Assembly (NCBI GenBank): GCA_965285935.1
Contig: OZ260667.1
Coordinates: 29,512,001 to 29,576,000, forward strand
DNA length: 64,000 nucleotides
Direction: 5' to 3'
DNA from: Ophelia neglecta
Taxonomy: Eukaryota
In this document: positions 1-24,200 of the stretch, piece after piece
How positions within the stretch are numbered: position 1 is the first letter of the stretch
Layout of the letters: the number at the start of each line of letters is the position of its first letter
Position numbers and translations under genes: made by a program
Notes under the pieces: generated by a model
The model's input: the letters and a program-made list of their open reading frames with translations, nothing else
Databases searched by the model: none
What the model was told of the DNA's origin: nothing

Positions 1-589
1 GCTTTGTCGTAGTGCAGAATACCGTAAGATGAGGGGAGAGTGGTCTTCTAAGCTTGTGTACAGGCCTACTCTATAACTGGAGTACTATCTTAATGTAACT
101 ACACTGATGGCAGAGACTCTGGTGCAGCACTACTGTACATAGAATCCTCAATATGTCTAGTATAACTTATTGACGGCTATATATATTTACAATTTGTTAG
201 TAGAAAGTCCCAGTACATTGACCAGGGGAGTTAGCCATCGACTAATTAATTAACAAAATGAAAGATTTACTACAATTGCAAATAATAGCAGCATTTCTCA
301 GCGAGGTGAACGACGATAAATAATAATGGATCTACTCAAGAATGGCTGCTTTCAATTTATATTGCTGCAACAATAAATGTAGATTTCTAAGAAAGAATGT
401 ATGGAACAGCAAAGACGATGCAGGTTGTTGAGACGCATGTGGCAAATAGTTTTGTTGAATATAATTTTCCGTCATTCAGTCAGGAGTAGAAGACTTGTCC
501 TTTCACCTGGTTGTGAGCCTGGGATCTTGTTTCAACAGAGGTACACCTTGGCAGGCGAGCAAAGACAAGGGTCGAGGAGGTAGCCTCAC

Positions 590-652
590 AACTCGGCACT
601 GATGCCTTGTACTTGTAGTAGATACAGGGCGGGTGAGAGGGGCTCCCGCCGC
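590..652 (-). CDS. Candidate 63-nt phase 0-0 exon for the M3-M4 intracellular loop (AAGAPLTRPVSTTSTRHQCRV)
   Basis: gtgcttctag| acceptor, |gtgagg donor, open in phase 0, locally GC-rich; no homology support because this loop is poorly conserved. Confidence 0.3.
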
Positions 653-2830
653 CTAGAAGCACGTAACTGTACCGACCGTATGCTGACCCAAAGAGAAACG
701 CGCAGGGAAGGTGTCAACTTTTCGGCCGACTCTAAACGTGGACAGGACAGAAACACTACAATGCTTGTGATAGGCATATGGTACAGTAACAAGTAAAGAA
801 CCTGCAGTAGTACCTTTCGATGTCCAAGCAATGGTACGCGCCTTGCAAAGGCAATGTATATATATAAATGAATATATTTGGTAATATATGAGCATGCCTG
901 GCATAATTATGTATAGTATAGGCAGGTCTGTTAATCTTGTTCCTGTGAAAGAGAGGTCTCGGTGCGCTTATCGACTTAATGCACAGTGGTAAGCCATGTC
1001 ACCGAAATTAATACGCTCACAAAGGGCCGTATATAGAGTGGAATTGACCTTAACATCGTATTTCGGTTGTTATTGTTCATTAAATACACGCGTTGTGTGA
1101 ATGAGCGTTCTTAAGTTTGACCGGATGAATGACATACATTTCTTGTTGGTTCCTTTAAAGCTGGCAAAATTCAACAGTTTGTTTGAACACATGAAAGAAC
1201 ACAACTTGTCCTCTTGTTTTGTGCAATGAACTGATTTGTCAATGTGATAAAACCTGTACTGACAAAATGAATGACACACTCGGAATAATTCAAAGTCTAG
1301 ATGCTAAGGTGACGTGTGCAAAAGGGTTTTTTTCTAACAAAAAAGCAAACTGTGGTGAAAAAAGAAGAAAGCTTTTAAAGACATTTTATGAAAGATAAGA
1401 CTAGGATAGTGCACCAGAAATACAAGTAGGACCAGAAGATACATGCAGTCTCAAGTTGTCAAAGTACGAAAAAAGGCGACAAGGAGATTAAGTTATGATC
1501 AGGGTGACAACATTGAGCTATTGACGTGATAGCACAAAGCAGGGTTTGTAGGCCAATCTTCATTTTGTGTTATATCAGGCGATTTTATACAGAAAATGAG
1601 AACAATAAGAGGTAAAGAGGTTAACGAGTTGAAAGTTGAGAAATGGTCATTATTCACAATAGGGTGGAGCTGAAATTGTTGATGAGGATTTTTAATAATT
1701 GAAATGTCATTGCACAAAGAAGCCAATTATTAAATATAAAATCCGGATGCATACAATTAACAAAACTCTAGGCCTTTAGACCATTCCATTCAAGCATTAG
1801 TAAGAGGTTTGATCGCGCGATAAGGGCTCACCAATTAAACATAAATATCAGACGATTTCCTCATTTCTGATCATTTTTACGAAATGTGTTTCATAATTCT
1901 TATCACTTTATAATTAACTTTCCGCATTAATCAATTTTATATATTTTTTTTTTTCAATAAATTCTTTTTGAAGTCCTAACTCAAATTCTTTTACAGTAAG
2001 TGGGTGGTCCAATAGGCCTCGGTGAAGGTTACATTCATTATCCGGCAATTGACATTTTGTGTTTTAGACGCCTATCCTTCCAGATATTTATACCGACTGG
2101 CGTTATGGTTCTTAATTCCTCCGGTTACACGGGACATGTGACCTTTCCAAAAGGCCTCTGTCATTTCGTAAAACATATGTGCAGTACTCTATGTCTACAG
2201 TGATGGCCTACTTTGTGACAACGGTAATATTGCCGTTAACGTAAAACTGATTGCAATGACTTTTAACTCTGTGTTCAAACACACTGCAAAAAACCCAACA
2301 GTGAAAAGTTTGAAACAGAAAGAATCATCATAACATGCCCAAGGATAAACTGAGATTCGAAGTGAAGCAATTGTGAGATTGATTATGACCGAACCGGTTG
2401 CTTACTGTCTCTCTCAAGGAGGAATTTTGTCGTTTCTTATGTGAAATAATATTATTGAAGAAACAATAGACCGGGACAAATTGGCACGTGTGAATGTGTC
2501 TTGGACATTCATGGTTCTCATGTGAGAGGGTTCTAGTTATTTGATGGTAAATGGGTGGAAGCGGCCATGTCAGTTTTTTTAAGGCCTTTACGTTATTCCA
2601 AACTGCCTGACAATCTGACCGCACCCCACGAAATCTCTGTCGACCGAACCCAAAGCACCCCCTCCCTGACCGCGCATACTGATAGTCGGAAATGGATAAT
2701 ATGTAGACGATGATGTTCTTTCTGTTTCATAGCTTTTCCGGTGGTTTCTTTCTTGAATTCCTTAGTGGCTATGACGCATTGTGCGGGGTGTGCTTGGTGG
2801 CCTCTGCGCCGACTTCACTCTGGGGTATAC

Positions 2831-3219
2831 CTGTTCGAGCGCCCAGCCGCCGGGCTCGGGTATATGTAGCCGCCTCCGGGCAGGGTTATCCACTCGAATA
2901 CTGCGCCTGGATATAACATTGACGATAGCGAACTCGAGCAGCCCAACAAAGACAAAGAAGAGGCAGACGATCATCCAGACGTCGATGGCCTTGATGTAGG
3001 ACACCCTTGGGAGGGCCTTGTTGGCCCCAGAGGTCTGGGTTGTCATTGTCAGCACAGTGAGTAAGCCAATCGACACCCGCGCGGGAATTGCGTCTATGTT
3101 CAGCCAAAACGATACCCATGATAGGATGACGATCAGAATGCTAGGGATGTACACTTGGATAAGGAAGAAACCGATGGAGCGCTCCAGTACGAAACGGATC
3201 TCCTGGCAGGGAAATGCTC
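2831..3219 (-). CDS. Alternative exon 7D: loop C end + M1-M3 + loop start
   Basis: tctccaccacacag|GA GCA ... CTC GAA CAG|gtatac, 389 nt, phase 1-0; M2 = [23 protein letters not shown]. Confidence 0.92.
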
Positions 3220-6200
3220 CTGTGTGGTGGAGAGAATAGACATTAAAGCACATGGGCACGCTTAATTTTATTATTTTGTTTACGGCTCTGAGGGTTCGAT
3301 TGTGTGGACACATATCCAAGGTTTCTTGTAATCTATTCCAGACGTCGGCTGCAGCTGAGCAAAGAGTAAATGGTGCACATCAGTAAAGCAAGACACCTAG
3401 ATCTACATGTTCGGGTTGACCATTCTGACAAGGACCACAAATGGAAAAGCTAGAATTAATCAGAATGAACTGAACATATACTTATATTGGGACTGTCCTA
3501 TATTCTTCCACAGTGTCATGATCCTTTGTTCGACAAAATGAGTAAGTTTCAGCAATCCTCCTCTTGTCTTTCTGCTCGCCGACTGTTTATACAAGCGCTG
3601 ACAGGGTATAAACGGCTTCCTTTTTTCTACTGATGGCTCTGCAGGAAATTCAATGAACTAATAGTCGGCTATTACATGGATGGCCTGCTGTAGCGTTCGT
3701 TTCGCGAAGTCTATGAGCTCGATGAGATTCGGCGAGCCTAGATAAGCGTCGTGTGAAATGTCAAGAGTTTGGTGAATGATAATGGAGGAGTCACTTTTAA
3801 TTATGACATGGACATATCAGCGGCGGCGGTGTGAAGCATCTTTACTCAACACTATAAACAATAAGTCGGCAAGGCATATATTTAACACACGGCTTACAAG
3901 CTAATTGAAGATTAAGCATCGAATTACTTGAGGTAACATGGTATCTCTAAAGCACTGCAAAAGCAGAAACAATATGACAATGGAAATAACGTTTAACAGT
4001 CAAAAAGCCACAGTACAGACGCAGGGTCCAACCGACGGGTAACTAAAAAAAAATACAAATTCCTTTATTGACTATCTTAGATGTCTTTAAGTTGATTGAC
4101 TACGTCAAATAAATGCATCTCACATTTGATAAATCTTCCCCTATAACGTCAGAAGGAACATTTACCGGAGTGGAGCTTGGTCGTAAAGACTTGGCATTTT
4201 AACAGATGGCAGAAAAAGCAGAAGCAAATAGAGAAAGAGACAAGGTTAGCAAGGTTGTATCGGGGAAATATATTTATGCAAACCATTATTCGTATGTGTC
4301 TACTGAAGTGTGTTTTGTGGGATTTCTGAATTCTTTAGCATAATTCAAATTGAAATTATGAGTTTCCTGAAAAACATACACGGCGACTGCTATTTTGGTG
4401 TCAACAAATGGCGACTGACGCTTCATCGTCGATTTAATGTGCAAAGTCACCTGATATGTAAATGGTGCAAGAGAAAAGAAATTCTCCATTAGCTACCTGC
4501 TCCATCTGGAGGTGGCCGTCCATGTCCAGCTTCTGCACGGGCGGGGTCGGACGGCGTACCGTGCTCCCCGTGCGCACGCCTTTCCGAGATATCACATTGA
4601 CCAGGGCGAACTCGAGCAGCGAGGCAAAGACGAAAGACAGGCAGACAGACATCCACACGTCGATCGCCTTGATATAGGAGACTCGGGGCAGGGAGGCGTT
4701 CGCCCCCGAGATCTGGGTAGTTGTGGTCAAGACTGTCAACAGACCCAGTGTGACACGCGCCGGTATAGCATCTATGTTTAACCAGAACGAGACCCAGGAC
4801 AGTATCACTATAAGAACACTTGGTACATACACTTGGATGAGGAAATATCCAATTGAGCGCTGTAGGACGAAACGTATCTCCAGACACGGGAATGCGCCTG
4901 TATGGAAAGAGGTAATGGTTTTATCATACTACTTCGGTTAAGACTTACCCCACTGGCTACTACTTCCTGGTGACTGAATGCCAACACGAAAAAATGTCTG
5001 TTTCGGTGCCGAGAGATAACGGTGATAGCGACATGGCTGAATGCATAGAGTTGTCTTTCCATACGGATGTTTTTGGGGGTATAGCCCTTAACTTTTTATA
5101 TCTTTGTGCCACTTATTGATAAAGGCATAACGTGTCGGTGGTCGGATCGTCTTTTCGCCGCGCCAAGGGGGTCGAGACACAATATTGCAGTACATATTAA
5201 GAGCATGCAACAAATGGGATAATTTCACACGTTTTTCTGAAAACAAACGCTTCACTACAAATCAAATAATTACTTTTCACAACATTCACACTTTGTGCAT
5301 GAAACTTATATGTGGGTAATACTGAGGGAACATGGAGAGATGTTGCACAACATTTGCGGACCAACTGCTCAATACAAGAGTTCAAGATGTGATCGACCAG
5401 ATGATCTGCTTCAAGATTCAGTTATCTTTTTATTTATTTTGTATGTGAATTCTTCGTGGATGTATTAATTAGTCATGGGAACAAGGCCAACCTGCACCAA
5501 CTTTGTACTAATGAACGAAAATTCTAGGGACTGAAATAGAAAAAGGTCGACGTTGTTTATATAGGTCTATATATATAAATATATATGTATATATATAAAT
5601 ATATATATATATGTATAATTCTAAATATTCGGGTCAAAGAGGAAAAGAGTAAGCGATAGAAGAGTGCATAAATGCATTTCCCCAGCAATGAAGCGGTAGC
5701 AGAAGCGAGATACAGCATTAAGTAAAGATGTTACGGGTGTGACGACTCTCTCCATTGAAGGGACATGCCCAATCGGCGATATCTAGAATTACCAATGAAC
5801 TAGTGAATTGAACAAATACTTGAGAATGATCATAGAAATTTTGACCGGGTGGCGATAATGCCAAATTACTGGGCCTTACTAAGGTGTAGAGAGAGAGTGC
5901 ATGTACTGATATAATAAAAATACAATTGGGTATAGCCTACAACTGGACGAGTATGTACCACTGGGTGCAGTGCATCACACTTACACCAAGTGCACACCGT
6001 ATGTTATGTGGAAGTGACGTAATACCTGCTCCATCTGCGCGTGGCCTTCTGCATCCAGCTTCTGTACTGGCGGCGGTGGGCGGCGCACTGGATTTACGGT
6101 GCGCACGCCCTTCCTCGATATCACATTGACGACAGCAAATTCGAGGAGGCTTACGAATACGAATACTAGGCAGACAGACATCCACACGTCGATGGCCTTG

Positions 6201-9200
6201 ATATAGGAGACTCGGGGCAGGGAGGAGTTGGCACCGGAAATCTGGGTGGTTGTGGTAAGAACGGTGAGTAGCCCCAGTGTGACCCGCGCCGGGATTGCGT
6301 CTATGTTTAACCAGAAAGACACCCAAGACAGGATGACGATCAGAATCGAGGGAACATAGATCTGAATCAGGAAGAATCCAATTTCGCGCCTCAGCACAAA
6401 GCGTATATCCAGGCAGGGGAAGGCTCCTGTTGAGGGGAGATATGGCAGAAGTGAGAAAGTAAGGATACGTATCAAACAAAAGGCACCATGCTCGGCAAAC
6501 CAGGGAATGCTGCTGGCATCTTTGTCGTCGTTGTCGTCACGTCATCAACTTGGCTATACATAGGATGGCGCCTCTGAGTTCCGAGTGGAATGACATGTTG
6601 ATGGGAGAGAGGCGGATTCCTATATTATAATATTCAAAATGTGATTAGCAAACGAGCATGCGTTGTCCCCAGACGCCCTTACCGCTCCGTGCGCATGACC
6701 AAAGTTCCAGGCGCAGTCTCGTAACGCGTTTCGCTAGCACGTGATCGTACGAGTCTGGTGTGAGACGTGCATATTACTATGAATGAGTGCAGCAAGGCGG
6801 ATGGTAGATGGATGCGCCAAACAATGAAGAACCACCGTATAATTGAAGGCGCGCTCACCATCGACAATAATGATGACACAAATGTAAAGGTTACTACGTG
6901 ACTACTTAGTGAATGGTGATCTCTATGTTAGATGGCACCAGCAACATATCGCTAGAGAGACCTGGCACCATAATAAGATTCCTATGAAACTAGGCCTACG
7001 TGATGTCTAAAGGAATATGTGCCGAAGCCAGAAGACAAGAACTCGAAAAATGAGGATAATGTGTTGAGGAAAGTCAAACTAAACTATGACATGAACCGAC
7101 GCCACACGAACGAAGACTTGACAGATAAATGGGTCATGTATTGAATGAGTTATCACTCCTTTACTCCAAGAAACCATGGAAAAGATGGACAAGAATAAGC
7201 ATTGGGTTTGGCAGATGCGATATATGCATTAAAGATTTAGAAGCTTAGCAAACAGGCGATAATAGTTTCGAATGGCCATAATTTAGAAGAAGCGTAGTGT
7301 GAGTAGAAGCGTTATAATATTGCACATATGAACATTTGTACACCTTGTGAGGAGATGTTAAAAAAACGTCCAAAAGCGTTCATCTACTGTAACACAAGTA
7401 AAGACATTTTTATTCGCAAACAAACGATTTACTCCTTAATGTTAATGTATTGTTGGCAAAAGACATTTCTCCGGAAATGGCTGCGGGGAGGGGAGGGAGG
7501 GGGATGAATTATTTATTGTTTAAGATGTAGAATAAGCTGTGTACATTTTGTCAGCGAACATAAAACATGTTGTAACACAGGTACAAAAAGCCACAAACCT
7601 TTAAGCTCAGCTACGATTAAACAGGTACTATACACTTTTGGTAATTACAACATACAACATGTAAAAGACGTAACAATTAATGACAGGGAGGGCAAGCCAA
7701 ATACTGGGAATGGGAAGGGTTTAGGGGTAAACATTTACGATGGTGGAGGTGAGCCCGACTTACACATAGCTGAACATACAATTCAAATAACCGCCAATAG
7801 TTTAGTCTGTCACCGATGTTAATGGGTAGACATAAAATGTTTAACGAGTAAGCAAAGACATAGGCATAAGCTGGGAAATGTGACAGATCTAAAGAAATAG
7901 CATGGCGGGTATACTGAAAGTAGGTAACAGCAATAGTAACAGGGCAGTGGGACATGGGAAACAAGGTAGAGGACGCGCATAGCATCAGTGCTAAGGGGAT
8001 GAGTCAAATATTTGTTCGGAAGCAGCGGAGTTACACAAAACTTTTTGTAAGCCAGAATACTCAAACGCACCCCATTTCCAGAACTGTGGTACTCAACAGG
8101 TTAAATTTGAAACCGATGTCAACACGGTTAATCAGTCAAACTAGCAGACTTGGTAGTGATTAGTGATTACTAGGAGCCACGACAAAAGTAGCACCAGCTG
8201 TATGTGCACTTATCAGACATGCGCAGAACATAGCCATACCTTATTAGGTAAAAAGGGTGCACGTCAATCTGGCCCAATATTGGTCAGTTGGGAGACAGTA
8301 TATTTTGTGGTGTATGAAATACCTGCTCCATTAGATTTCCTCGTCTGGCAAGTAGTTTTCGTTTTTGGTTTCTCCGTTTCAATGGGTTTATTGGACGGAT
8401 CCCCTTTCTTGATATCACATTCACTAAGGCGAACTCCACGAGGGCGGCAAAGACGAAGATGAGACACATAGATATCCAGACATCTATGGCTTTAATGTAA
8501 GACACTCGAGGCATGGATGCGTTTGCGTTAGCGCTCTGTGTGGTCATGGTAAGTACCGTGAGGAGCCCGAGCGACACGCGGGCAGGAATTGCGTCTATAT
8601 TCAGCCAGAACGACACCCATGATAGGATGACGATCAAAATGGTAGGGATGTAGATTTGGATCAGATAGTAGCCGACGCTTCGGTGGAATTTAAAGTCGAT
8701 CTTTAAGCAGGAAAAGGATCCTGTCGATGGCAAAAGAAAAGTTTAAAAGGAGTGCTTGAACCGTCCATCCGGTACGTATGTATTCTGTCAGTGTAGCACG
8801 CGCCGAAAACTGCTATCACAGTTTCCCTACCAACAGTAAGTATACCAAACTAAATAGTATCACGATAGAAAGCTTTTGGATTGGCACATTATTATAATAG
8901 TCTCTGACGAACTACTTTCTGTTGCCCCCAGTATTGGAATGAATCATAGTTAATAGAAATACCAAGGTTGTTGACAGAAGACAAAATACCAATGGACGGC
9001 TTAATGTGTCTGTAAAATAGTTAGGAACAAAAATAGGGAAGTTTGCCATTTTTACATGCTATTGCCGTATCAAATGATTTCTACAGAGATAACACTGCCA
9101 TGCATGTACTGTAAACATGTATATGAATGTGTCGTACGACTTCATGCGCAAGGAGAGATGTAAAACGGATCGCTCACAAGAAAGCATTAAGCTATTTTAA

Positions 9201-12200
9201 TCCAGCATTCCAACGAAAAAAAACCTAATAGTTTTAGAAACAGAAGCAAATTCTGTCAATTCAGAATCTATATGTCGCGATAAAATGGCAAAGCTCCCTA
9301 AAATTGTTCAATACAAGATTTCTTTGCGTAAACGAGAAGGTTCGTCTGTAATGACAAAAAAGACGAAATTGATCGTCGACCAAGAAGTGGTTGATATCGT
9401 TACCAAATTCGCGTAGATATATTTTTTTGAAAAATATAATATCGCGTCAGAGCTCCCCACCCCCGACCCTACCCCCAGGCTAAACTATGTTGTTCCGAAC
9501 TCACTTCCAATCGACGATGTCTGTAAAGGGGTCACTATGCATAAAAGTCAGCAAGTTAATTAAGTATTAGCCAAAACATAATATGAAATCGAGGCACAAT
9601 TCTCGTGCACATATACCAAAATTCAAGGCGTCGGTGCCATCGAAAACGTGATCAGTATAACAAGCGTGTGAGCATAACGTTACACAAAAATATCTAGACA
9701 GGAATAATAGTATTGATATCAGAAGGCGATATAAATCATCGGCAAAGGAGAGCAACCTGAAGCGGAAATAACACCGGGCGGTTGAAGCACAGTATGGAAC
9801 CGTCTCATTAGATCATTGGAAATGCGACATTAATGAAACGAGGAAATAACAAATGTTAAGACTAAATTAGGATTTCAACGATATGTCAATTTGGTCTATT
9901 GATTTACGAAAGTTTATCGATAAAATCATTATAAAATCAGTGAAGTGATCGTCCATATTAGGTGATATTGTGAAAGATATATAATAGGAAGCTGTCGTGC
10001 AGACGTCATGTTACTTGGCTTTTATCAAGGAGAAGAAACACATGTCCAACCTGCAGTATAGTTTTGTGAGCAGTCGTAGAGAATTTTGTCCTGCAAACTA
10101 AACTGTGGCAACTGTAGTTCCGCATCGATTTGTACGGGATCTTCCAACCACGCAAAATACATTGTGTCCATGGTATAACCGACTGCAAGATACAATACAG
10201 CAAATATGGAGCTAGTTGCAAATATGCAGCATTGAGCCTAGCTATAACTAGCTAGTGACTGTAGACTGGCCAAGCCAGTGGTTTTATGAGGCAGACCAAT
10301 CTTAGTAGATTTTATCCGGACAAAATGGTCCAGTAAGAATGGTGTCGGACTTATATGGTTCCAGACATAAGGGTCCCAGGCGGGAAGGCGGAGATAAAGG
10401 TCGCATTAGTATAAAACATTTATTCAAATATTTAAACAAAATTTCAATGCACCCCTAATGTGCTCATTTTGTACTTGCAACATTTTATATTTTCTGACGG
10501 GACTATTATGTCCGGGACAGTTATGCCCGGGACTATCTTGTCTGTGACCATTTTGTCCCGGACTCCCCCATACCATATCCAGTAGAGATCTTTGTTGGGA
10601 CTAATTTTGAGTCCATTTACATCACGCGAATCATAAAAACTAACGTTATATTCATGCTGATATGTGTCTTTTGATTAGCAATAATTTCTGTTTAATATAT
10701 ATTAGCGTAGGTAATTATAAACGATAGTATCATATAGAGGAAAACTCTTGAACACGTCTGGATTATCTCTAGGCCAGAGGAGTCGTATGAGAGTTGAATA
10801 AAATGACACCTTAGATAAAAAAGTAAATAATTACTTACAGCTTTCAAACATCATTGGACATGTTTGGGTGTCCAACGGATATTTCTGTAACATCATAGGG
10901 CAAGATAAAGTGGCTGAAATTCTGGAAAAGGATAGGGATGCATAGTTTGTACCCATCTTATACAGTCAGTGATATATCTGTAATTTTTTATCATGCGAAA
11001 TAATAATTATTGTTCAAATTTTCTTTTATTTCACAACCAATTAAAAAAAATCATTTTGTTTGCAGAAAAAAGCACAAACATGCAGGCGATAGATACTTTT
11101 ACACAAGTGAGGTAAGAACATACGTCAAATCAAAGTTAATATTGGTTCAATGTGGCCTAATAAACTCATTCATAAACAATTACATTAGAATTTGGTAACT
11201 TTCCCTATGCCCTAGAGCAAATCCTTCAGCAATATAGCCCAATCGAAAACCTCCAAGGAATGGCAATTAATCGATTTGATAACCCTTGGTACAGTTTTCT
11301 TTTATATATTCGATTAAAGTGTGTAAATTCTTGATGTATACATGGAGCTAGTGAGGGAGGCATCATGCAGTCACAGTCCTAATCACGAGGAAGTGTGTAC
11401 TCCTAGTGATATATGCTTATTTGTTTTAATGATTCAATATGAAGGCGGCTCAGCCAGGGCCCAGAACTCGTGGTCTTGCGGCGATAAGCAATGTGTTTAT
11501 CGCGGCCAAGACTATGTCCTAATTAATTGTTAATTATAACAATGGGGTATACATTTTTTTCAACAATAATACCATGAACATTACTTTTTCCATAGTTCCT
11601 AATTCACTAGTTATTGCATTTAGGTTAGTTAAGGTCATTCCTTATTTCAAACAAGCAGTATAACAAGCTTCTTTAAATCACATTGGGGGAGCAGATGAAG
11701 GGAGCAGGTGAGGCATTAATTCATACTTACTTTGTCACATACCAAAGATGACCAGAGGAATTTAATCGTAAGAGCCTATTATCAACTGTTACGTCATGGA
11801 AGCTGGCTCTCTTTTCGTTCCGAAAGAAAGTATCCGGAATCCATATTTTTTCCCAGCCGTCATCACCGAGCCGAACTTGTTTAGTCTTTCCTTGCGTAAA
11901 GTTGAATTGGAGACGAGGGTCTCTCCATGCTTGACGCAAATACATGCTGACTGAGTAGTCCTGTTAGTAAAAAGCACATCAACTCAAATTCATGCGTATT
12001 AGTTGGTAAGATTGTGTGCTGGGTTAAACACTTACTTCGTGACGTACCAAACTCTGCCTGTAGAATCGAGAGACATTAATCTGTTTGCTACAGTGATATC
12101 ATGAAAGGCCGCCCGTTTTTCATTACGAAAAAACGTGTCTGGTATCCACAGTCTATTCCATATCCCATCTCCTAACTTGAGCTTTTTTCCTAAGTTCGGT

Positions 12201-15200
12201 TGCGGTTCAAAAACCAAACGTGGATCATACCACTCTTGACGCAAATAAAAACTAACGGAATATTCCTAAAAGAGAAACAGTTGAGAAGAAATAAATGAAT
12301 AAAAGATAACTGTCCGGCCACCAAAGATCGAGTCAGTTTTCTAATATCCGCCCTTCAACTGGAATGAATCTAAACACATTTCTCTATTGCAGCGCCAAAG
12401 AAGTCGAAACAAGATGTGTTTGCGCATGCACTCCATCTGGCGTATTTTTCCATTTGTATACGTTTTACCCTCGTCAAGACAACACAAATTGCGTTAAAGC
12501 TATACCTTCATCACAGGCACGTGAGAAGGCTCCATGCGTTCGGGTAAAGGTATTTTAATAGTTTATGTTTGCATTCATTCATTATTTTTCATTCAATATG
12601 GTAAAGTAAATTAATCACGTACCATGGTCTGTTCACTGATGGAGTAAAAACTGTTGACGTATATACCAAGGCGTACTTCAGTGGGAGAGTCTGGAAGAGT
12701 AACGGAGAGAAACACCATATAAAACTAGTAAACGGTAGAAACCGCTCCTCGTCAGCATGCGAGTGAGCATGCGCCCGGGCTAAGTTACTTATAAGGCAAT
12801 GCTTAAAGTTATGTGTCTCTATTAAATTGATTTTAAAAAGGCAATGATATATAAAGAAAAAGTTCATCGGGCCAATTAATGACAGTCTGAATAACTGGCC
12901 TTAAGAACTTGCTATTTTATAACTTAATACGATGGAAAAAATAGTAGCTCAAAACTATCATAGTCTAAATATGACGGTATTTATAGATAACATATCTCGT
13001 TAAATATTGCAATTTCTAATCTAGATGTTTGAAAACCATGCTGTTTTTTCTCAACGCTAGGATGAGAAAACTAGTTGCAATACATATTAAGTCTAAGTGG
13101 CTTATTTTTTTAAAGAAAGTTTGTGCACGTTTTTATACAAAAGTGCGGTGGCCAAGGCATACGGCGCTCTACAAGAGGAACTTATTTGAGAGAGAAAGGT
13201 AAAGAAGAGAGCACAGGAGGCAAGCAGGTGGGCAGAGCAAGCTTAGCTACAACAATCACGATATGAGCACAGGAACTATACCAAAAACAAACAGGTATCC
13301 AATGTGTAGATTCGGTAATAAACATGCCAGATTACCATGTTTCCCAACAATAATTATTAAAAACATCCTGTCTTTTTTACAATAATATAAAAATAATATA
13401 ATCCATTAAACTATTCTTAGATTTTCATCATTTACATACTACTAATGGATAAAAGTTCAGCTTCAACTTCAAACTCCCATCATTTATTGAAGGAAACACT
13501 ACTGAGATTTGAAATAAAATTATAATTCAAACAATAAAACTTATAGCTCCAGTTAGTTAGTTTTGATATCAGAGAGCACAGTTAGTTGTTATGCCTTAGG
13601 TGCCTACAAACGCAACTGGTGAAATAGTGAAGAAAGTTAACCAAATGGTGTAAAGTGCAAAGATGCCTAGCAGCAGTGGTGATGTTGTTCAGGCATTAAG
13701 TCAGGCACGGCAAATTTAGTCATATTAAACAGCTTCAAGCTTGAAGTTTGCAAACTTGAAGTGAAGATGAACATGCGTGTTAGAAAAACGTAAAACCATG
13801 CGTCCGTGCACAGATATATGTACCTAACATAGGTGGGTCCTGCTTCGTGTACGAAGACAGTAGCCGGCGAACCAAAATATCTTGCCTGGCGAATAGAATT
13901 GTAACACGAACATTGTCCAAGAGTGTATCATATTTAACTAAATAAAACAAGGATAAAATAATATATCGTACAACTCATCAGCACCCACAGAAGGCCAGGC
14001 TAACGTGGAACAATGGCCCGGGAAATTGTCATGAGACAGACGGCTAGCACGAGATACTGGCTACGGTACATTCTTTTGTCAATTTTGCGCACAACACATC
14101 AAGAAATCAGTAACAATAACAGCAAATGTCATAGTATGATGTTAAAATACGATCAAAGTGTATATATGAAAGAAAGGGGCAAAAAATGACGGCACATTAA
14201 TAGAATCTATGAAGAGTGATTTCCCTGCAATGCTGTAGTTCCACGTAGCCTAATTTCTGCAACAGTTGGCACGATTAACAGGAAAGATGACGGACGTAAA
14301 GTAAAGTCAGTCATTGCAAACTGAATCCAGAGAGTACGAATCCGACATGCCGCACAAAGTGGACGCCTCCTAGAGCGAAATTCAGAAAGGAGAAAGAAAA
14401 GAGAAAGAGAGAACTGATAGCTCACGATGCTCTGGTATGGATTAACCGTTGCTCATGGGTTTGAATGCTGGACCCACGGGCACTGAAACCGAAACTGCCC
14501 ATCAATACTGTGCTACTTGACGAAGAGCTAACATAAAACTACAAGTGCGCATGTCGCATGCCTAGGCAGCAGTAACGCTCATCCTAGCAGGTTATTGGAG
14601 GAAACTTTTTGTAATGTCATTTTTATGTGTTGATATTTGGAATTAAAAACTTGCCAGTTCTAAGTTATTGATAAAGTTTGGAATTGTACATAGTGCCCTG
14701 GTAAATAGTCCCAGCTCATCCCAGAAGCGCACACGCTCAGGCAGATATGTGACTACAAATCAAGTTCGCCAGATTCAGACATTGCAAAAAGTTCCATCGC
14801 CGCGCAACCGACCAGTTTGATCAAAGGTCACGTGACTACACCACCTGATCCTCCCATTGTTTACCTTTCGATGGAGGTTCCTGTCGGTTGTAGCCCGTTA
14901 ATAAACGCGCAAGCACGCTCGTTCTTCTATAGAAGAGATGTCAAAAATGACAAAATTAGTGCTCTACACTATGGGGGTGCGTGGTTCTTTTAACTATTCA
15001 GAATAATAATCATCCTTTTAAAGGGAATTTAGCAATACTGAATACACGATAGGAAGGACACAGTTAGTTAAGTCCGGTAGGACTAGCACATTAAGAAGTT
15101 CAGGTTCCCCACAGATGATTAGAATGAATCAATACTAACTGCCATACACCCCCTTGTATGTACCATGCAACTAGAACAACCAACGTTTAACAGTTAAGTG

Positions 15201-18200: not shown

Positions 18201-21200
18201 ACGAGTCCGCGTTATAAATTATGTCAGGCATGTTTTTGCTACCCTATTGGCGATCACGCCACCTCATTTTCGAATATGTTTCGAGAGATGGCACAGGAGA
18301 AGACAATACAGGACGAGGCGGGGTGGGGAAGGATGTACGACACTTACAGGGTAGATAACCAGGGTGAGGCTCTGTCTGTCAGAGCTGGTAAAGACACCTG
18401 ATATATCACCGTGTCTGCTGTAGAGCAACGCAATAAAATTAATGTAAGACAAGGTTGGAACAACTGAAAGGGATTGAAAAGACGCATGTCGGGAACATCA
18501 AGCAGCATAAATTCTTAACATGAGTTTACACTATAGTAACGAAGCCACTGATCTCACTCTAGACAAGTATCTAATAGGAGTGCGAATTAGAATATTCATA
18601 TAATATGGGATTTAAGCCATTTTATACTCTACGTTTGTCTTCAAGCAATAGTCGGAATGATCCGTTATTTTCATGACGCTAAATTCCTTAAGCGATTGTT
18701 GAAATGCGCGGGAGACAAGCTATATTTGTGTCACCTGTAGGCTATAGCTTTCGGCGCAGGCATATCATACTGCGAACTATACAAATCTTATTTATTCATC
18801 TTACCCTATGTCTTGATTATTATAATCCTACAAATAATCAGAATATGAAACAAGTCGAATATCAACAAGCATATTAATGCGCCATTTCCTTCGTCTCAAA
18901 TTGGAATGCAATGATATGAGTTCAGCTGACAATTTGCTATCAATCCTTAGCAGTCGAAAACTCTTGAATGGAAACAAATGGATGTTCTATTCTACAGTAG
19001 CTATATTGACCTAAGCATGAACACTATCATAAGGACTTGTATTAGTTGTAATGCCTAAACCTGTGACCCATAGTGTATCAACATTTATTTGTAATACATA
19101 AATCTATACTGAGAGTAACATAATATCAAGAACAAATAATGATATGATAAAGCATCGGCGTGATAACCTTACGACATACATTAGAATCGGAAAACGTGCG
19201 AAACTGAACAAGATGAAATCGAGGCTGTACATGCGTCACGAGACGACGCTACACCAATGAAAAGTAGTGCAAATTGTCGGCTAACTCATGATCTCTGGGA
19301 ACTATTAACAAGAAATGGAAAAACAAAATCAACACGTGGCTTGGTGAACATCAGGCAGTCTCGTGTGTAGCCAAGCTTTTCTAGTCTGTATAGGTGTTTA
19401 CCAAATCATACACGACACGATCTTCCACATATAACCATGCGACCAGTTCTTTCTAGGTTTCCAATTTTGACAGTACATGTATTACCCTTTTATTTTCGCG
19501 ACATGCTGCGACTAATCCGAGACTGCCTGGTAAATCCACACCGTAGCAGTAATCATATACACCTCAACATTGCAACTGGACATTATAAAAAAACAAGAGT
19601 TAACTAGTTTACAAAGAGGTATTTCACTTACGAATCCGGGTCTTCGTGGCCCTTTTTTGCTTTCATACTTAAACGCCTTTTTTGTGCGCTGGACAAATTA
19701 ACAGTACAAATTAATGTTTAGAGTTATGCGGGAACATACTGAGGAAAACATTGTCGGTTTTTTTTCTTCCATTGGTTAAGGAAATGGTACACTTTTCACA
19801 AAACATTGTTTTAATTATACACGCATAGGACTGTTACACATTTTTAAATGCTGAAAAAACATATGGTGTGTGTGTTTATAAGGTCTACTACTCTTGAATT
19901 AAAGGCTATTCGCAATACACAGGGTTATAGATTGTGAGGGACGTAATAAAGGATAACACACATAATTTCTGTTGAGAGTAGTAATCCTGCCGTCGAGGAG
20001 CACTTGGCATTGCCAGGAAGCGGTATCTAAGAGGCAAACGTTGCGCTCTACAGGTCTAAATTACCAGTTAAAACCAACGAGACATATCACGGATTGCTTT
20101 ATATTTTTATTATGCAGGGTATAATCACAGTAGTATGTCGTTTGCATTTTTTCAAGTGCATGCTGTAGGGCGAGCTCATCTCAGAACAACAAAAGGCACC
20201 ATGTCATTCCGGAAGGCGCATCAATTTGCAGACGGTAGTGTTCCGATAAACATGTCAATGTTGGGAGTGCTTTTTTGACAGGGATTAGCTCTGTATTACA
20301 GGAAGTCAAAATGACAGATCTGTCTACACGAGACGCACGCTTTATTATCTAACCGTTTACCATGTCCGATAGCACCCATGGATGTAGTTATTTTGTCGTT
20401 TTCAATCATCACGAGGGATAGTAATGAGACCACATTACCCACCATGTCAATCTCTCTTTGGCCTACCTAGCGCCAAGCTTGTTTTTGTCATAACAATAAA
20501 TCGCAAGTTTTAAAAGCAAATCATGGCCATGTCCAATTCATTTCATTTTTTATTGATTGGTATCATTATATTAATGGACGCCAGTCTGGGCTGTAGCTGT
20601 GTCTGCTGGCCGCCCTTAAAAAGACAAGATTACATAAAAACTGTTTTAGGCCTATATAGTCATATTATGTCAACAGAAGAAAGAATCAAAATAATTGAAA
20701 ATTCTTCAACTAATTGCACTTGCACGGATTTTTCTGTAGATTATTTTGAATGGAGTGGTAATTCTGTAAAATTTGAATTGACTCGAGATAAGCCTATAGT
20801 CATATGATCATAGACCAGCGGAGGATAGGGTTTTAAGAAATTTCAAAACTCAGACCAACCATGGAAGACTACGTCATTCGAGTCAGGCTGATTACACGCT
20901 TGAACAAGCAGAAGAATGACCCGTTGGTGATCCGAATATTTAGGCCAATTATTGACTAGTTTGATGATCCTAAAAATATAACGACGGCCTATCAACGATT
21001 TGGTTGTGGAGACTGGCATTCTCGGCTTTGGGAGTCGAGTATATGGCGGCGCCATAGTGATGTGACAGAGATATAAGATGGAGAATGGACGACACGCGAG
21101 GGACTGGGGGAAAGGAATTCCATCGAACCAAATAGTACAAAACTTGGAAGACGGATTTTATGTTCTGTACATTTATAACTGCGAGACTATCCTCTGAACA

Positions 21201-24200
21201 AGAGTAGCCTAAGAAAAAGGTGACGGGCATCATGTCAATGAATATGTTGATTATGAGTAGGCCTATGTATGTCTATTTACTATAGTGGTCTCCCTGATCA
21301 CAGGGCTATTTAATGGAAACCGATAAAAATACACGACAGTGTGAAACACCGACAACTTTTGAGAGTGCCAGGAATTAAAACAACCCCGAATACTAGAGGG
21401 CCTAAATATTTGTATTCTGGCAGACGATGGTAAATATAGGCGCCCTTTTCCAGCTAAATTAAGTTGTACGTGACAGTGACGCTGATCATTGCGCGGACGT
21501 CAGCGATGTATTCTACTTGAGTCTTTGTTTGCTTTCCATGACTAGACATGGCTGTGGATTATTAGAGCACACAGAACTGCTTTTTTGGTGTTAGCTATAT
21601 TCAGAGAATTCTGTCGTGGGGAGGAGGTGGGGCGTGGGGCGTGGGGGGTGGGGGTGGGGGGTTGGAAGAGGGGAGGCTAGTAGGTCAGCAGCCGTGGCCG
21701 ATATCGGTTGATTGTCGGTTTACGGCATGCCTAGTGAAGGGCGAGCCGTTTTACGGCATGACAAGGGCGAGCTGATCTAAGGATTGCCTATTCTCGCGAG
21801 GAATGGGTCGTCAACACACCCCTAATAACCAATCTCTCGACACTCGCCGGGACCACAATATCCCCAAAGCCCGTTAGTGTCTTTAATATACATCAGCTGA
21901 GGTTTTCGCACGCGGCGCACAACACGCCAGGATCGTAGGCATATCCACTCTCCTCCTCTGGGAGAACGACATAATTTGCTGGAGGTTTAGCAGATTCGCC
22001 TAGAAAAGAGGTTAAAATATTGACAATTTCAACCAGAAAAGAAAAATCCCGATGTTCTGTCTTCCTTCACAAAGAAAAAAATAACCCCAGAAAACCACAG
22101 GCTTTATTGATGGCACAATACCTTGTGGGTTCTTAACATAATCAGCTCGCGCAGCAACGACAAGCGGCACGCCGATCTCGTCTGGACGAGACCTGCGACG
22201 TACTCTCACGAGACGAATGGGGGGATCGATTAGATAAGACCGACCCAGGCAGACAAATACTGTGCTGGGCTTAAGTTTCCATCCCGGTCAATAACGTGTA
22301 ACTTCTTGAATTCAGTAAGAAGGAAAATACGAATTAAGACTGCGCGCTGTGGCAGCGAGTTTATCTAGACTGTCTATCTGACTAATGCACACAATGTGCC
22401 GCAGCCCGTCACAGGGTGGAGATAAATCGGTAGATATACGGGCGATTTCAAGGCTAAGACAATGTCTTCAATTGAAGATTGTAACTGCACCAGATATATG
22501 CAATCAATGAGGGAACAGTCAAGGTCAAATTAGACAGCCAGCTAAGCCACTCATATGAGAGGCGCCAACGGGAATAAATTTAATAAGATTATCAGACTGC
22601 AATCAATGTCTGAGATTGATCGCATATCTGATAATTAATAATTGCAACAAGAACGAAAAATCTTATAAGGTCATACGGTTTAATAGCCTGATAGTTGACG
22701 GCTATGAAATGTTATCTTATTAATAATAAAAACATTTATCGAAATATTTTGCCAATAATCGAACGTCTGGGTATACGCAAACCTCACGTTAGGAAATATA
22801 TGTACTTAATTGGCTGTGTGCACCTTAGGCCTACCCCCTTCCGAGATCGATGGCCTAAATACCCCCTCCAATAATATGTGGAATGAGGCCGATGCCCTTG
22901 GCTTTGGTGGCGTTCGTGAGCTCGCTGTTAGCGAGCTAAGAGTCACAATGGACTTAAACACGAGGCAACCGGAAATGATTCTCGGCCCTAACAGACGAAC
23001 AGAATATTAACAATAGTCTGTTATTAGAGGCTGCAACCATGGGAGTCATTTATTATGTTTCAAATATAGTTATCACTGTGGGAGATGCTTTTCTACAGCT
23101 GTGCCCAAAGCATTAAATACAATTACAATGCATCATACATTTTTCATTATTACGGCGAGCGATGTGCGGTGACGCTGGACAAAACTCGATGTTGCGTTTG
23201 ACTGGACGAGCTGAACTTTCATCAACAAGCAATAACAGGAGAATGGTCGGCTAATGAAGCTCGTCGGGAGACAAAAAGCAGGCTTGAGAGGATGGCTAAA
23301 ACGCGCTCGGACGACCTCTGATAATGATATGCTTTTAAATGGGAAGCTCGTTGAGCCGTCAGTAGGCTCTCGAGAGTCGTAAATTGTCGTAAACCAGAGC
23401 TCTGAAGTGGTGGGTGGCGGTCTGAGCAGGACGTTGGTGGTCTTATCAAAGAGGACTCTGCAGGCTGTCGTCTGTCGTGCCTTGTCGTTATATATGTCTG
23501 GTTCAAATCTCCCCCACTCCAACGTGTGGCCTAACTTTTACATTAATGAGTATTTCTAAAGGATAATTCACGTACTAAGGCAGGAAGAGGATCTCTGTCG
23601 GTTCATATTTCACCAGAGCCGTGCAAGTCGTGCCGGCTGTGACGGAGCCTCTTGGAAGATAAGATAGGCAAAATATCAGCTTTTTCCGCCGCTAAGCCCG
23701 TAAAGGCAAATCTCACCGGCAGATAAAACAGAATTATTGATGACTCAAAATGTCATTATACCTTAGTCATTGTATATGCCGAAACAGTGAATAACCTTTG
23801 TGTTTGTAGCTATTTTGGCTAAGATAGGAAGAAACAATATAGCGTGGATAAAATTTAGGGATTGGCCTTTACTAATTTGAAAAAAAAATTTCCCAGACAC
23901 AACATTGACCGAACGAATTGCGCCGACTGAACATATGCATGAAACAACGAAAATGAAGACGAAGACACAGCCCAGGCCTTCAAGCTTTTAATGGGGGATT
24001 TTTCTCCTGGGTTACAAATTCAATACCTTTTGGGTAGAAATGGAATAAGGCAAAGAAGTGAGTACGCGAGTTGACTAAACCAAGTGCTGCCTCGCCGAAA
24101 GGGGTTAGAATGAGAAGACCGTTGAGAAATCAATACAGTGGTTGGCCTTTGAGGGTCAGTACCGATCTAAGCTGGCCCTAACACATTGTCTAGCTGCGAT

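Follow-up and report, generated by a model that had tools for sequence, protein, structure and literature searches.

Four tandem copies of an M1-M3 pore exon, probably mutually exclusive alternatives, in a glycine-receptor-like anion channel gene of the annelid Ophelia neglecta

A four-copy exon array in an anion channel gene

We analysed 64,000 nucleotides of the genome of the annelid Ophelia neglecta (assembly GCA_965285935.1, contig OZ260667.1, positions 29,512,001 to 29,576,000; hereafter the window), whose reverse strand carries a gene that is, by its sequence, a Cys-loop (pentameric) anion channel gene of the glycine receptor (GlyR)-alpha-like kind. Within it stand four neighbouring homologous exons, copies A to D (Table 1), each spanning the region from before M1 to beyond M3 (M1 to M4 being the transmembrane segments), and we find it probable that they serve as mutually exclusive alternatives. 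All four contain PARV, and PAR ahead of M2 is a motif that marks anion channels (PMC2064938); each copy matches the Pfam domain Neur_chan_memb (PF02932) at E-values of 1e-32 to 1e-34. Read from their third base the copies encode uninterrupted peptides of 132 (A), 133 (B and C) and 129 (D) amino acids, nearly invariant from M1 to the start of M3. A pyrimidine tract and AG (AG/G) stand before each copy, and a CAG/GTA donor follows it. Because the length of every copy is 2 mod 3, inclusion of either zero or two copies would shift the reading frame and lead to early stops; the first-base frame, in which a copy would be read if joined onto another copy, holds many stops in each of A-D. The introns between copies (1.1-1.9 kb) are mutually unrelated outside the exons, and no conserved intronic repeat family was found around the array.

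An earlier note on this stretch, made from the sequence alone, had described the four exons, found no other exon of the gene between them and pointed out that joining two would shift the frame. Sequence, translation and splice signals bear out the coordinates, lengths and phases that it gave, the read-through frames do contain stops, and the absence of other exons was upheld by the searches described below. It missed a decayed fifth copy, the duplication of the M4 exon (outside the window) and the published nematode precedents.

Table 1. Exons of the channel gene and copies of its M1-M3 exon, in transcription order (window positions unless a G000:C12 position is given)
Feature	Position	Strand	Remarks
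N-terminal exon	near 13819-13884	-	placed by homologue tblastn
Upstream constitutive exon	12623..12691	-	donor gtacgt; 5' boundary approximate
Ligand-binding-domain exon, variant a	12036..12265	-	230 nt, 2 mod 3; AG and GTAAGT sites
Ligand-binding-domain exon, variant b	11731..11960	-	230 nt, 2 mod 3; AG and GTAAGT sites
Single Cys-loop exon	10839..10921	-	83 nt; C-x13-C
Single loop-C exon	10051..10182	-	ends ...SQNYTA + G; ...ACT GCA G/gt donor at 10051, phase 1
M1-M3 exon, copy A	8323..8720	-	398 nt, phase 1 to 0; highest divergence among the copies
M1-M3 exon, copy B	6026..6426	-	401 nt, phase 1 to 0; Pro-rich tail
M1-M3 exon, copy C	4497..4897	-	401 nt, phase 1 to 0; sister of B
M1-M3 exon, copy D	2831..3219	-	389 nt, phase 1 to 0; nearest to the copy in a relative's mRNA (P0238)
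Decayed fifth copy (pseudo-exon)	~551-841	-	~2 kb downstream of D; found in a relaxed search
M4 exon, first	G000:C12:29509984-29510172 (L031 7984-8172)	-	starts INIVENG, ends in stop
M4 exon, second	G000:C12:29509583-29509783 (L031 7583-7783)	-	starts INIVENG, ends in stop

An AT-rich (TATATA-type) low-complexity palindromic tract lies at window positions 5554-5628, in the intron between B and C. A 17-nucleotide near-repeat of the words coding for PARVTL, at 8789-8805 upstream of copy A, was judged to be at chance level and was set aside.

Duplicated exons rather than duplicated genes

Exons were searched singly, and natural full-length homologues were placed on the DNA by tblastn as surrogates for a spliced model. 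Many such homologues revealed no ligand-binding-domain (LBD), Cys-loop, loop-C or M4 homology between copies A-D, even at E < 0.5, in a search that scored the downstream M4 exons at E 1e-9 to 1e-13. A positive control was available 770 kb away (G000:C12:30277860-30291214; L042-L045), where the same search peptides found two complete tandem GlyR-like genes, separated by ~10 kb, in each of which every exon occurs once and the full set stands in order. Because no other exons lie between A-D, while the control pair shows full sets, the array arose by duplication of one exon and not of genes.

These searches bear also on a different arrangement, in which each copy would head its own 3' block with its own M4 exon and polyadenylation site, or would belong to its own transcription unit. 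Such blocks are known at unc-49 of Caenorhabditis elegans where, in the account given by PMC6920096, one shared N-terminus is spliced to three alternative 3' blocks holding the transmembrane segments. unc-49 orthologues are the top multi-module matches (P0001, C. brenneri UNC-49), and in a paralogue from Paralvinella palmiformis (L039) an M3 + M4 exon pair is repeated (18689-19710 and 21081-22073) after a single M1-M2 exon. At our locus, however, the spaces between copies lack M4, LBD, Cys-loop and loop-C matches and two shared M4 exons lie downstream of D; none of the four copies closes with a stop, each having a phase-0 GTA donor at its end; and a relative's transcript (P0280) joins an M1-M3 exon to a homologue of these shared M4 exons. 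We regard separate 3' blocks or transcription units as very improbable here.

Purifying selection and a decayed fifth copy

In pairwise comparisons among A-D, nucleotide identity was 60-77% and amino acid identity 67-87% (77% and 87% for C and B, with a synonymous distance, dS, of ~1.3). The proportion of synonymous differences (pS) was 0.61-0.96, saturated for most pairs, against 0.10-0.22 for nonsynonymous differences (pN), and the dN/dS ratio omega was 0.06-0.12 for those pairs where dS was computable. The earlier note had remarked on many synonymous differences against a conserved protein and had expected a ratio well below 1, and on both counts these values agree with it. None of the copies has a stop or a frame-breaking indel in its 129-133 codons, and the splice signals are kept.

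The decayed fifth copy shows what happens otherwise. It aligns to copy C with 66% nucleotide identity over 268 nucleotides (local alignment score 67; shuffles had a mean of 24.9, a standard deviation of 4.0 and a maximum of 42), so that its divergence is no greater than that of the live copies from each other; nonetheless it has 16 indels, many of them not multiples of three, and its peptide remnants fall in three different frames. That is, the fifth copy is an internal control for the neutral decay of an unused copy at this very locus. Nothing else in the available evidence speaks as strongly for a coding role of each of A-D through most of its past as the contrast between these copies, intact with their splice signals, and the similarly diverged fifth.

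Related arrays in other annelids

Related two-copy arrays, for which the earlier note had proposed a tBLASTn search of related genomes, occur in four independent annelid-type loci, each with the same exon order as here and two M1-M3 copies: Capitella teleta (L038), Ridgeia piscesae (L040), a capitellid-like Logan genomic contig (L046) and an ENA contig (L047). Other exons are doubled too, namely LBD, Cys-loop and M4 in Capitella, LBD and M4 in Ridgeia, and M4 in the ENA contig; the Logan contig has one M4 match, at its end. The M1-M3 copies of these loci are intact with a phase-1 acceptor, as in Ophelia, and an ...EQ/GTA-type donor was found in 3 of the 4 Capitella and Ridgeia copies (all but Ridgeia copy 2, where no donor could be placed).

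The copies fall into two types. In all four loci the first carries DAIPARV, with a Pro-rich tail after M3 in Capitella, Ridgeia and L047 and likewise in L046, while the second carries NIEA[TS]PARV and a different, more basic tail; A-D all carry the first signature. In trees, copy 1 of Capitella groups with copy 1 of the Logan capitellid (support 96/88), as do their second copies with each other (93/64), so that both copies must have survived a speciation, although trees on these 112 columns resolved little beyond this capitellid pairing. We infer an old cluster of two exon types, of which the first expanded to four copies in the lineage of Ophelia. The fifth copy lies where the second exon type lies in other annelid loci, and may be its decayed orthologue.

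Two peculiarities of the Capitella locus (L038, KB293367.1) deserve mention. It has two copies of the Cys-loop exon (11974-12057 and 12368-12454), of which Ophelia has only one, and its two M1-M3 copies do not differ at all in their first 38 residues, which points to gene conversion over their 5' half.

The comparison with other species also addresses whether the array could be an artefact of assembly, from collapsed or expanded haplotypes or from misjoined paralogues. Some duplicated modules elsewhere do look artefactual or very recent: in Elysia (L037) a two-exon M1-M3 block is repeated with 98% exon identity, and in Marmota the modules are identical. We took both as recent duplications or artefacts and as no support for the array. 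Copies A-D are a different case, being only 60-77% identical in nucleotides and separated by unrelated introns; the same arrangement is found in four independent assemblies of other species; and short-read contigs of three sequencing runs tile the whole 6 kb evenly, though all three were made from a single sample, perhaps the one that was assembled. We give an assembly artefact almost no credence. Separately, the contigs of all three runs break only at words of 29-31 nucleotides common to C and B (window 4667-4695 and 6195-6225); at this length, exact repeats within the coding core can fragment de Bruijn assemblies.

The remainder of the gene and the identity of the channel

Upstream of the array, Pfam PF02931 (Neur_chan_LBD) matches both LBD exons and the Cys-loop exon. 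The two LBD exons are homologous and of equal length, and form a second putative pair of the mutually exclusive type in this gene; a relative's mRNA (P0238) uses a variant to which b is 85% identical. The loop-C exon supplies the final G of a glycine codon that is completed by the first two bases (GA or GC) of whichever copy follows.

Two homologous M4 exons lie 4.7-5.2 kb downstream of the array and 1.8-2.4 kb beyond the start of the window. A donor-like gtatgtaag directly follows the stop codon of the first M4 exon, so the pair may represent alternative terminal exons, or the first M4 may be skipped or spliced through. Phase 0 is shared by the ends of the M1-M3 exons (...EQ) and the starts of the M4 exons, so that the short cytoplasmic loop between M3 and M4 is split across two exons.

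Among named sequences, those nearest to the constitutive exons come from annelids (a Capitella model, P0244; models from Hirudo, Helobdella and siboglinids; and the mRNA contig P0238, whose Cys-loop and loop-C exons are 90-91% identical to those here). For the class of receptor we used a relative's full-length transcript, P0280, which among relatives of solved structure matched GlyR alpha3, alpha2 and alpha1 best, at E ~1e-105 to 1e-107, compared with ~1e-85 to 1e-87 for GlyR beta and ~1e-84 or weaker for the beta subunits of the GABA-A (gamma-aminobutyric acid type A) receptor. The lophotrochozoan members of the GlyR-alpha-like clade include glutamate-gated channels (Aplysia GluClAc2).

Transcripts and gene models of relatives

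Spliced sequences from relatives show the junctions predicted here. The JGI mRNA contig L041 (P0238), a spliced cDNA, holds one LBD exon (of the b type), the Cys-loop exon and the loop-C exon, and then directly one M1-M3 exon, before continuing into unspliced intron after ...MEQ; its M1-M3 exon is sister to copy D in two trees (support 99/94 and 96/93). The Logan transcript P0280 reads ...DQ/INVIENG..., which is the junction predicted between M1-M3 and M4.

Gene models are inconsistent at these loci: that of Capitella uses copy 2, that of Lamellibrachia a copy of type 1, and that of Ridgeia joins both copies through intron sequence. Many top matches of our exhaustive search were models with two or three modules, including C. 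brenneri UNC-49 and an Ixodes 'GABA receptor', and such concatenation of modules in gene predictions is the usual artefact at mutually exclusive clusters. The Ixodes scapularis entry ('gaba receptor invertebrate', P0002, 504 amino acids) has three Rdl-like M1-M3 modules that are 91-94% identical, and may reflect either a mutually exclusive cluster or tandem genes.

Differences between the four pores

Differences among the four copies lie at pore-lining positions of M2, to either side of it and along M3. With the Arg of PAR numbered 0', position 2' of M2 is Ser in A and D and Thr in B and C; 3' is Leu in A, B and C and Ile in D; 11' is Met in A and D and Thr in B and C; 15' is Ser in A, Ile in B and C and Thr in D; and 16'-17' is AN in A and SG in B, C and D. 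All four have Leu at 6', where the mammalian GlyR sequence that we compared has Thr. In the pre-M1 linker copy A reads KIDFKFHR and the others xIRFVLxR, and the tails following M3 are basic in A, Pro-rich in B and C and short in D. Positions 2', 11' and 15' of M2 matter for channel blockers and modulators in related receptors. By analogy, the copies would give subunits that differ in conductance, gating, pharmacology and anchoring.

Mutually exclusive use of the copies

We think it likely that A-D are alternatively used, mutually exclusive exons of one GlyR-alpha-like channel gene, as the earlier note proposed. Its proposal is strengthened by the finding that these are duplicates at the level of the exon, incompatible with each other in frame and under purifying selection, between a single loop-C exon and shared M4 exons; the parts of it that we reach by inference are the mutual exclusivity itself and the use of all four. 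Pillmann et al. (PMC3228551) predict mutually exclusive exons from homology, comparable length and the conservation of reading frame and splice sites. All of these are seen in A-D, which are neighbouring, homologous at 67-87% amino acid identity, similar in length and drawn from one and the same structural region of the channel protein, with splice sites and reading frame kept and inclusion of two copies non-productive.

Tandem exon duplication would have made a cluster of cassette exons, in which exactly one acceptor among A, B, C and D is joined to the loop-C exon at its phase-1 donor (10051), and the chosen copy in turn, from its phase-0 donor, to one of the two alternative M4 exons. Each mRNA would then contain one module of pre-M1, M1, M2, M2-M3 loop and M3, together with the first half of the short M3-M4 loop. 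Only single-copy mRNAs would be productive, forms with zero or two copies presumably being removed through their frame and nonsense-mediated decay. Steric exclusion is unlikely to enforce the choice, because the introns between copies measure 1.1-1.9 kb; trans-acting factors may regulate it. With two LBD, four pore and two M4 exons, up to 16 subunits could be made. On this view every one of A-D would be spliced into mRNA in Ophelia, only a single one into each, and the isoforms would differ in function.

Several results weigh against this reading. The stretch occurs in three sequencing runs, all of them genomic contigs of one sample, which tile exons and introns evenly and have no splice joints, and word-index and exhaustive HMMER searches found no database protein or transcript at least 90% identical to any copy. 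In no species did we find a pair of transcripts sharing their flanking exons (at least 95% identical) while differing in the M1-M3 block, and in the RefSeq and ENA isoform sets of the homologues (Lineus, Tubulanus, Owenia and Lingula) the variation is confined to the termini or the extracellular domain. No docking or selector RNA pairing was detected in a scan of one window size and one flank length; the best docking candidate, a G-rich tract at 9442-9483, was equalled or bettered by 56 of 60 composition-matched shuffles. Finally, monophyly of A-D is not rejected by an approximately unbiased test (P = 0.278), so the expansion could predate or postdate the split from other annelids.

Some of these same results would be expected if only one or two copies are spliced today, the others having been silenced too recently to have decayed: RNA from this species supports none of the copies (the runs containing the stretch being all genomic), the arrays of other annelids hold only two, the fifth copy shows that the locus does lose copies, and an expansion confined to this lineage is compatible with the unrejected monophyly of A-D. 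A copy long silent should nevertheless resemble the fifth copy, whereas all pairs of A-D are saturated or nearly so at synonymous sites with pN of at most 0.22 and no stop or frame-breaking indel, and the pyrimidine tract, AG and CAG/GTA donor are kept in all four. We therefore hold silencing of two or three copies to be unlikely, while one copy may have been silenced very recently.

Mutually exclusive use of A-D could be part of a wider scheme, which we put forward only tentatively. The annelid locus might encode a whole family of inhibitory subunits by means of three independent mutually exclusive clusters (two LBD, four pore and two M4 exons; up to 16 subunits), an old pore cluster of two types having grown to four live exons and one dead; different neurons or muscles would choose among the pores, and the isoforms would co-assemble as heteropentamers.

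Comparison with known systems

The earlier note treated a four-way swap of the pore block in an anion channel as undescribed, which proves too strong, since nematode unc-49 (PMC6920096) and avr-14 (PMC8841521) both exchange channel domains; what stands is that the form here differs, an internal four-way cassette with M4 chosen separately. unc-49 (Bamber et al. 1999, cited through PMC6920096) is alike in being one anion Cys-loop gene with a shared extracellular part and tandem alternative transmembrane blocks, and its products, in what that source relates of them, are distinct subunits able to co-assemble (B alone, or B with C). Its alternatives, again as that source presents them, are multi-exon 3' blocks containing part of the binding site, M1-M4 and their own 3' end, unlike the single internal M1-M3 cassettes in Ophelia with their common upstream donor and shared M4 exons, of which one of two would be chosen. 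The phylum differs too (Annelida rather than Nematoda), as does the receptor clade, here GlyR-alpha-like. At avr-14 (gbr-2), a nematode glutamate-gated chloride channel (GluCl) gene, isoforms A and B differ in the ion-channel domain, AVR-14A being non-functional as a homomer (PMC8841521), but the choice is between two alternative C-terminal regions and not within an internal cluster of four cassettes.

Mutually exclusive cassettes born of tandem exon duplication are well known in insect Cys-loop genes, at exon 8a/b/c of the nicotinic acetylcholine receptor subunit alpha6, exons 3 and 6 of Rdl and exon 3 of GluCl (PMC2064938). As proposed here, such genes have several clusters that combine freely, and alpha6 exon 8 changes M2 residues (PMC2064938). 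That subunit, however, belongs to a cation channel and its exon 8 covers only the M2 region, as against the whole of M1-M3 of an anion channel exchanged in four ways, while the clusters of Rdl and GluCl, which are anion channels, alter only the extracellular domain (PMC2064938) and not the pore block. Invertebrate NALCN, including that of lophotrochozoans, acquires alternative pore sequences through spliced duplicated exons (PMC3557258), but this channel is of an unrelated superfamily (4x6TM) and the swap changes a selectivity-filter residue and ion preference, where A-D all keep PAR. A full-text literature search, with subscription journals outside its scope, found no description of an internal four-way M1-M3 cassette in a GlyR-like anion channel. 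The locus thus combines features known separately; its form is new, whereas the principle of swapping a channel domain was already known.

Implications for inhibitory channel diversity

Gene duplication is the usual source of pore diversity among pentameric receptors. In Ophelia, splicing would exchange M1-M3, the gating interface and part of the cytoplasmic loop, and with the binding domain chosen independently of the pore the products would be a natural set of chimeras; to vary the pore over a fixed binding site is what structure-function studies do with hand-built constructs. Alternative exons can be seen to arise and die at the locus, with four live copies and one dead here and two-copy arrays in other annelids. 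Because gene predictors fuse or drop copies, as in the models of Ridgeia and Capitella, the subunit inventories of lophotrochozoans are likely under-counted. If the wider scheme is true, it is splicing, not gene duplication, that would set the conductance, pharmacology and anchoring of fast inhibition in these animals.

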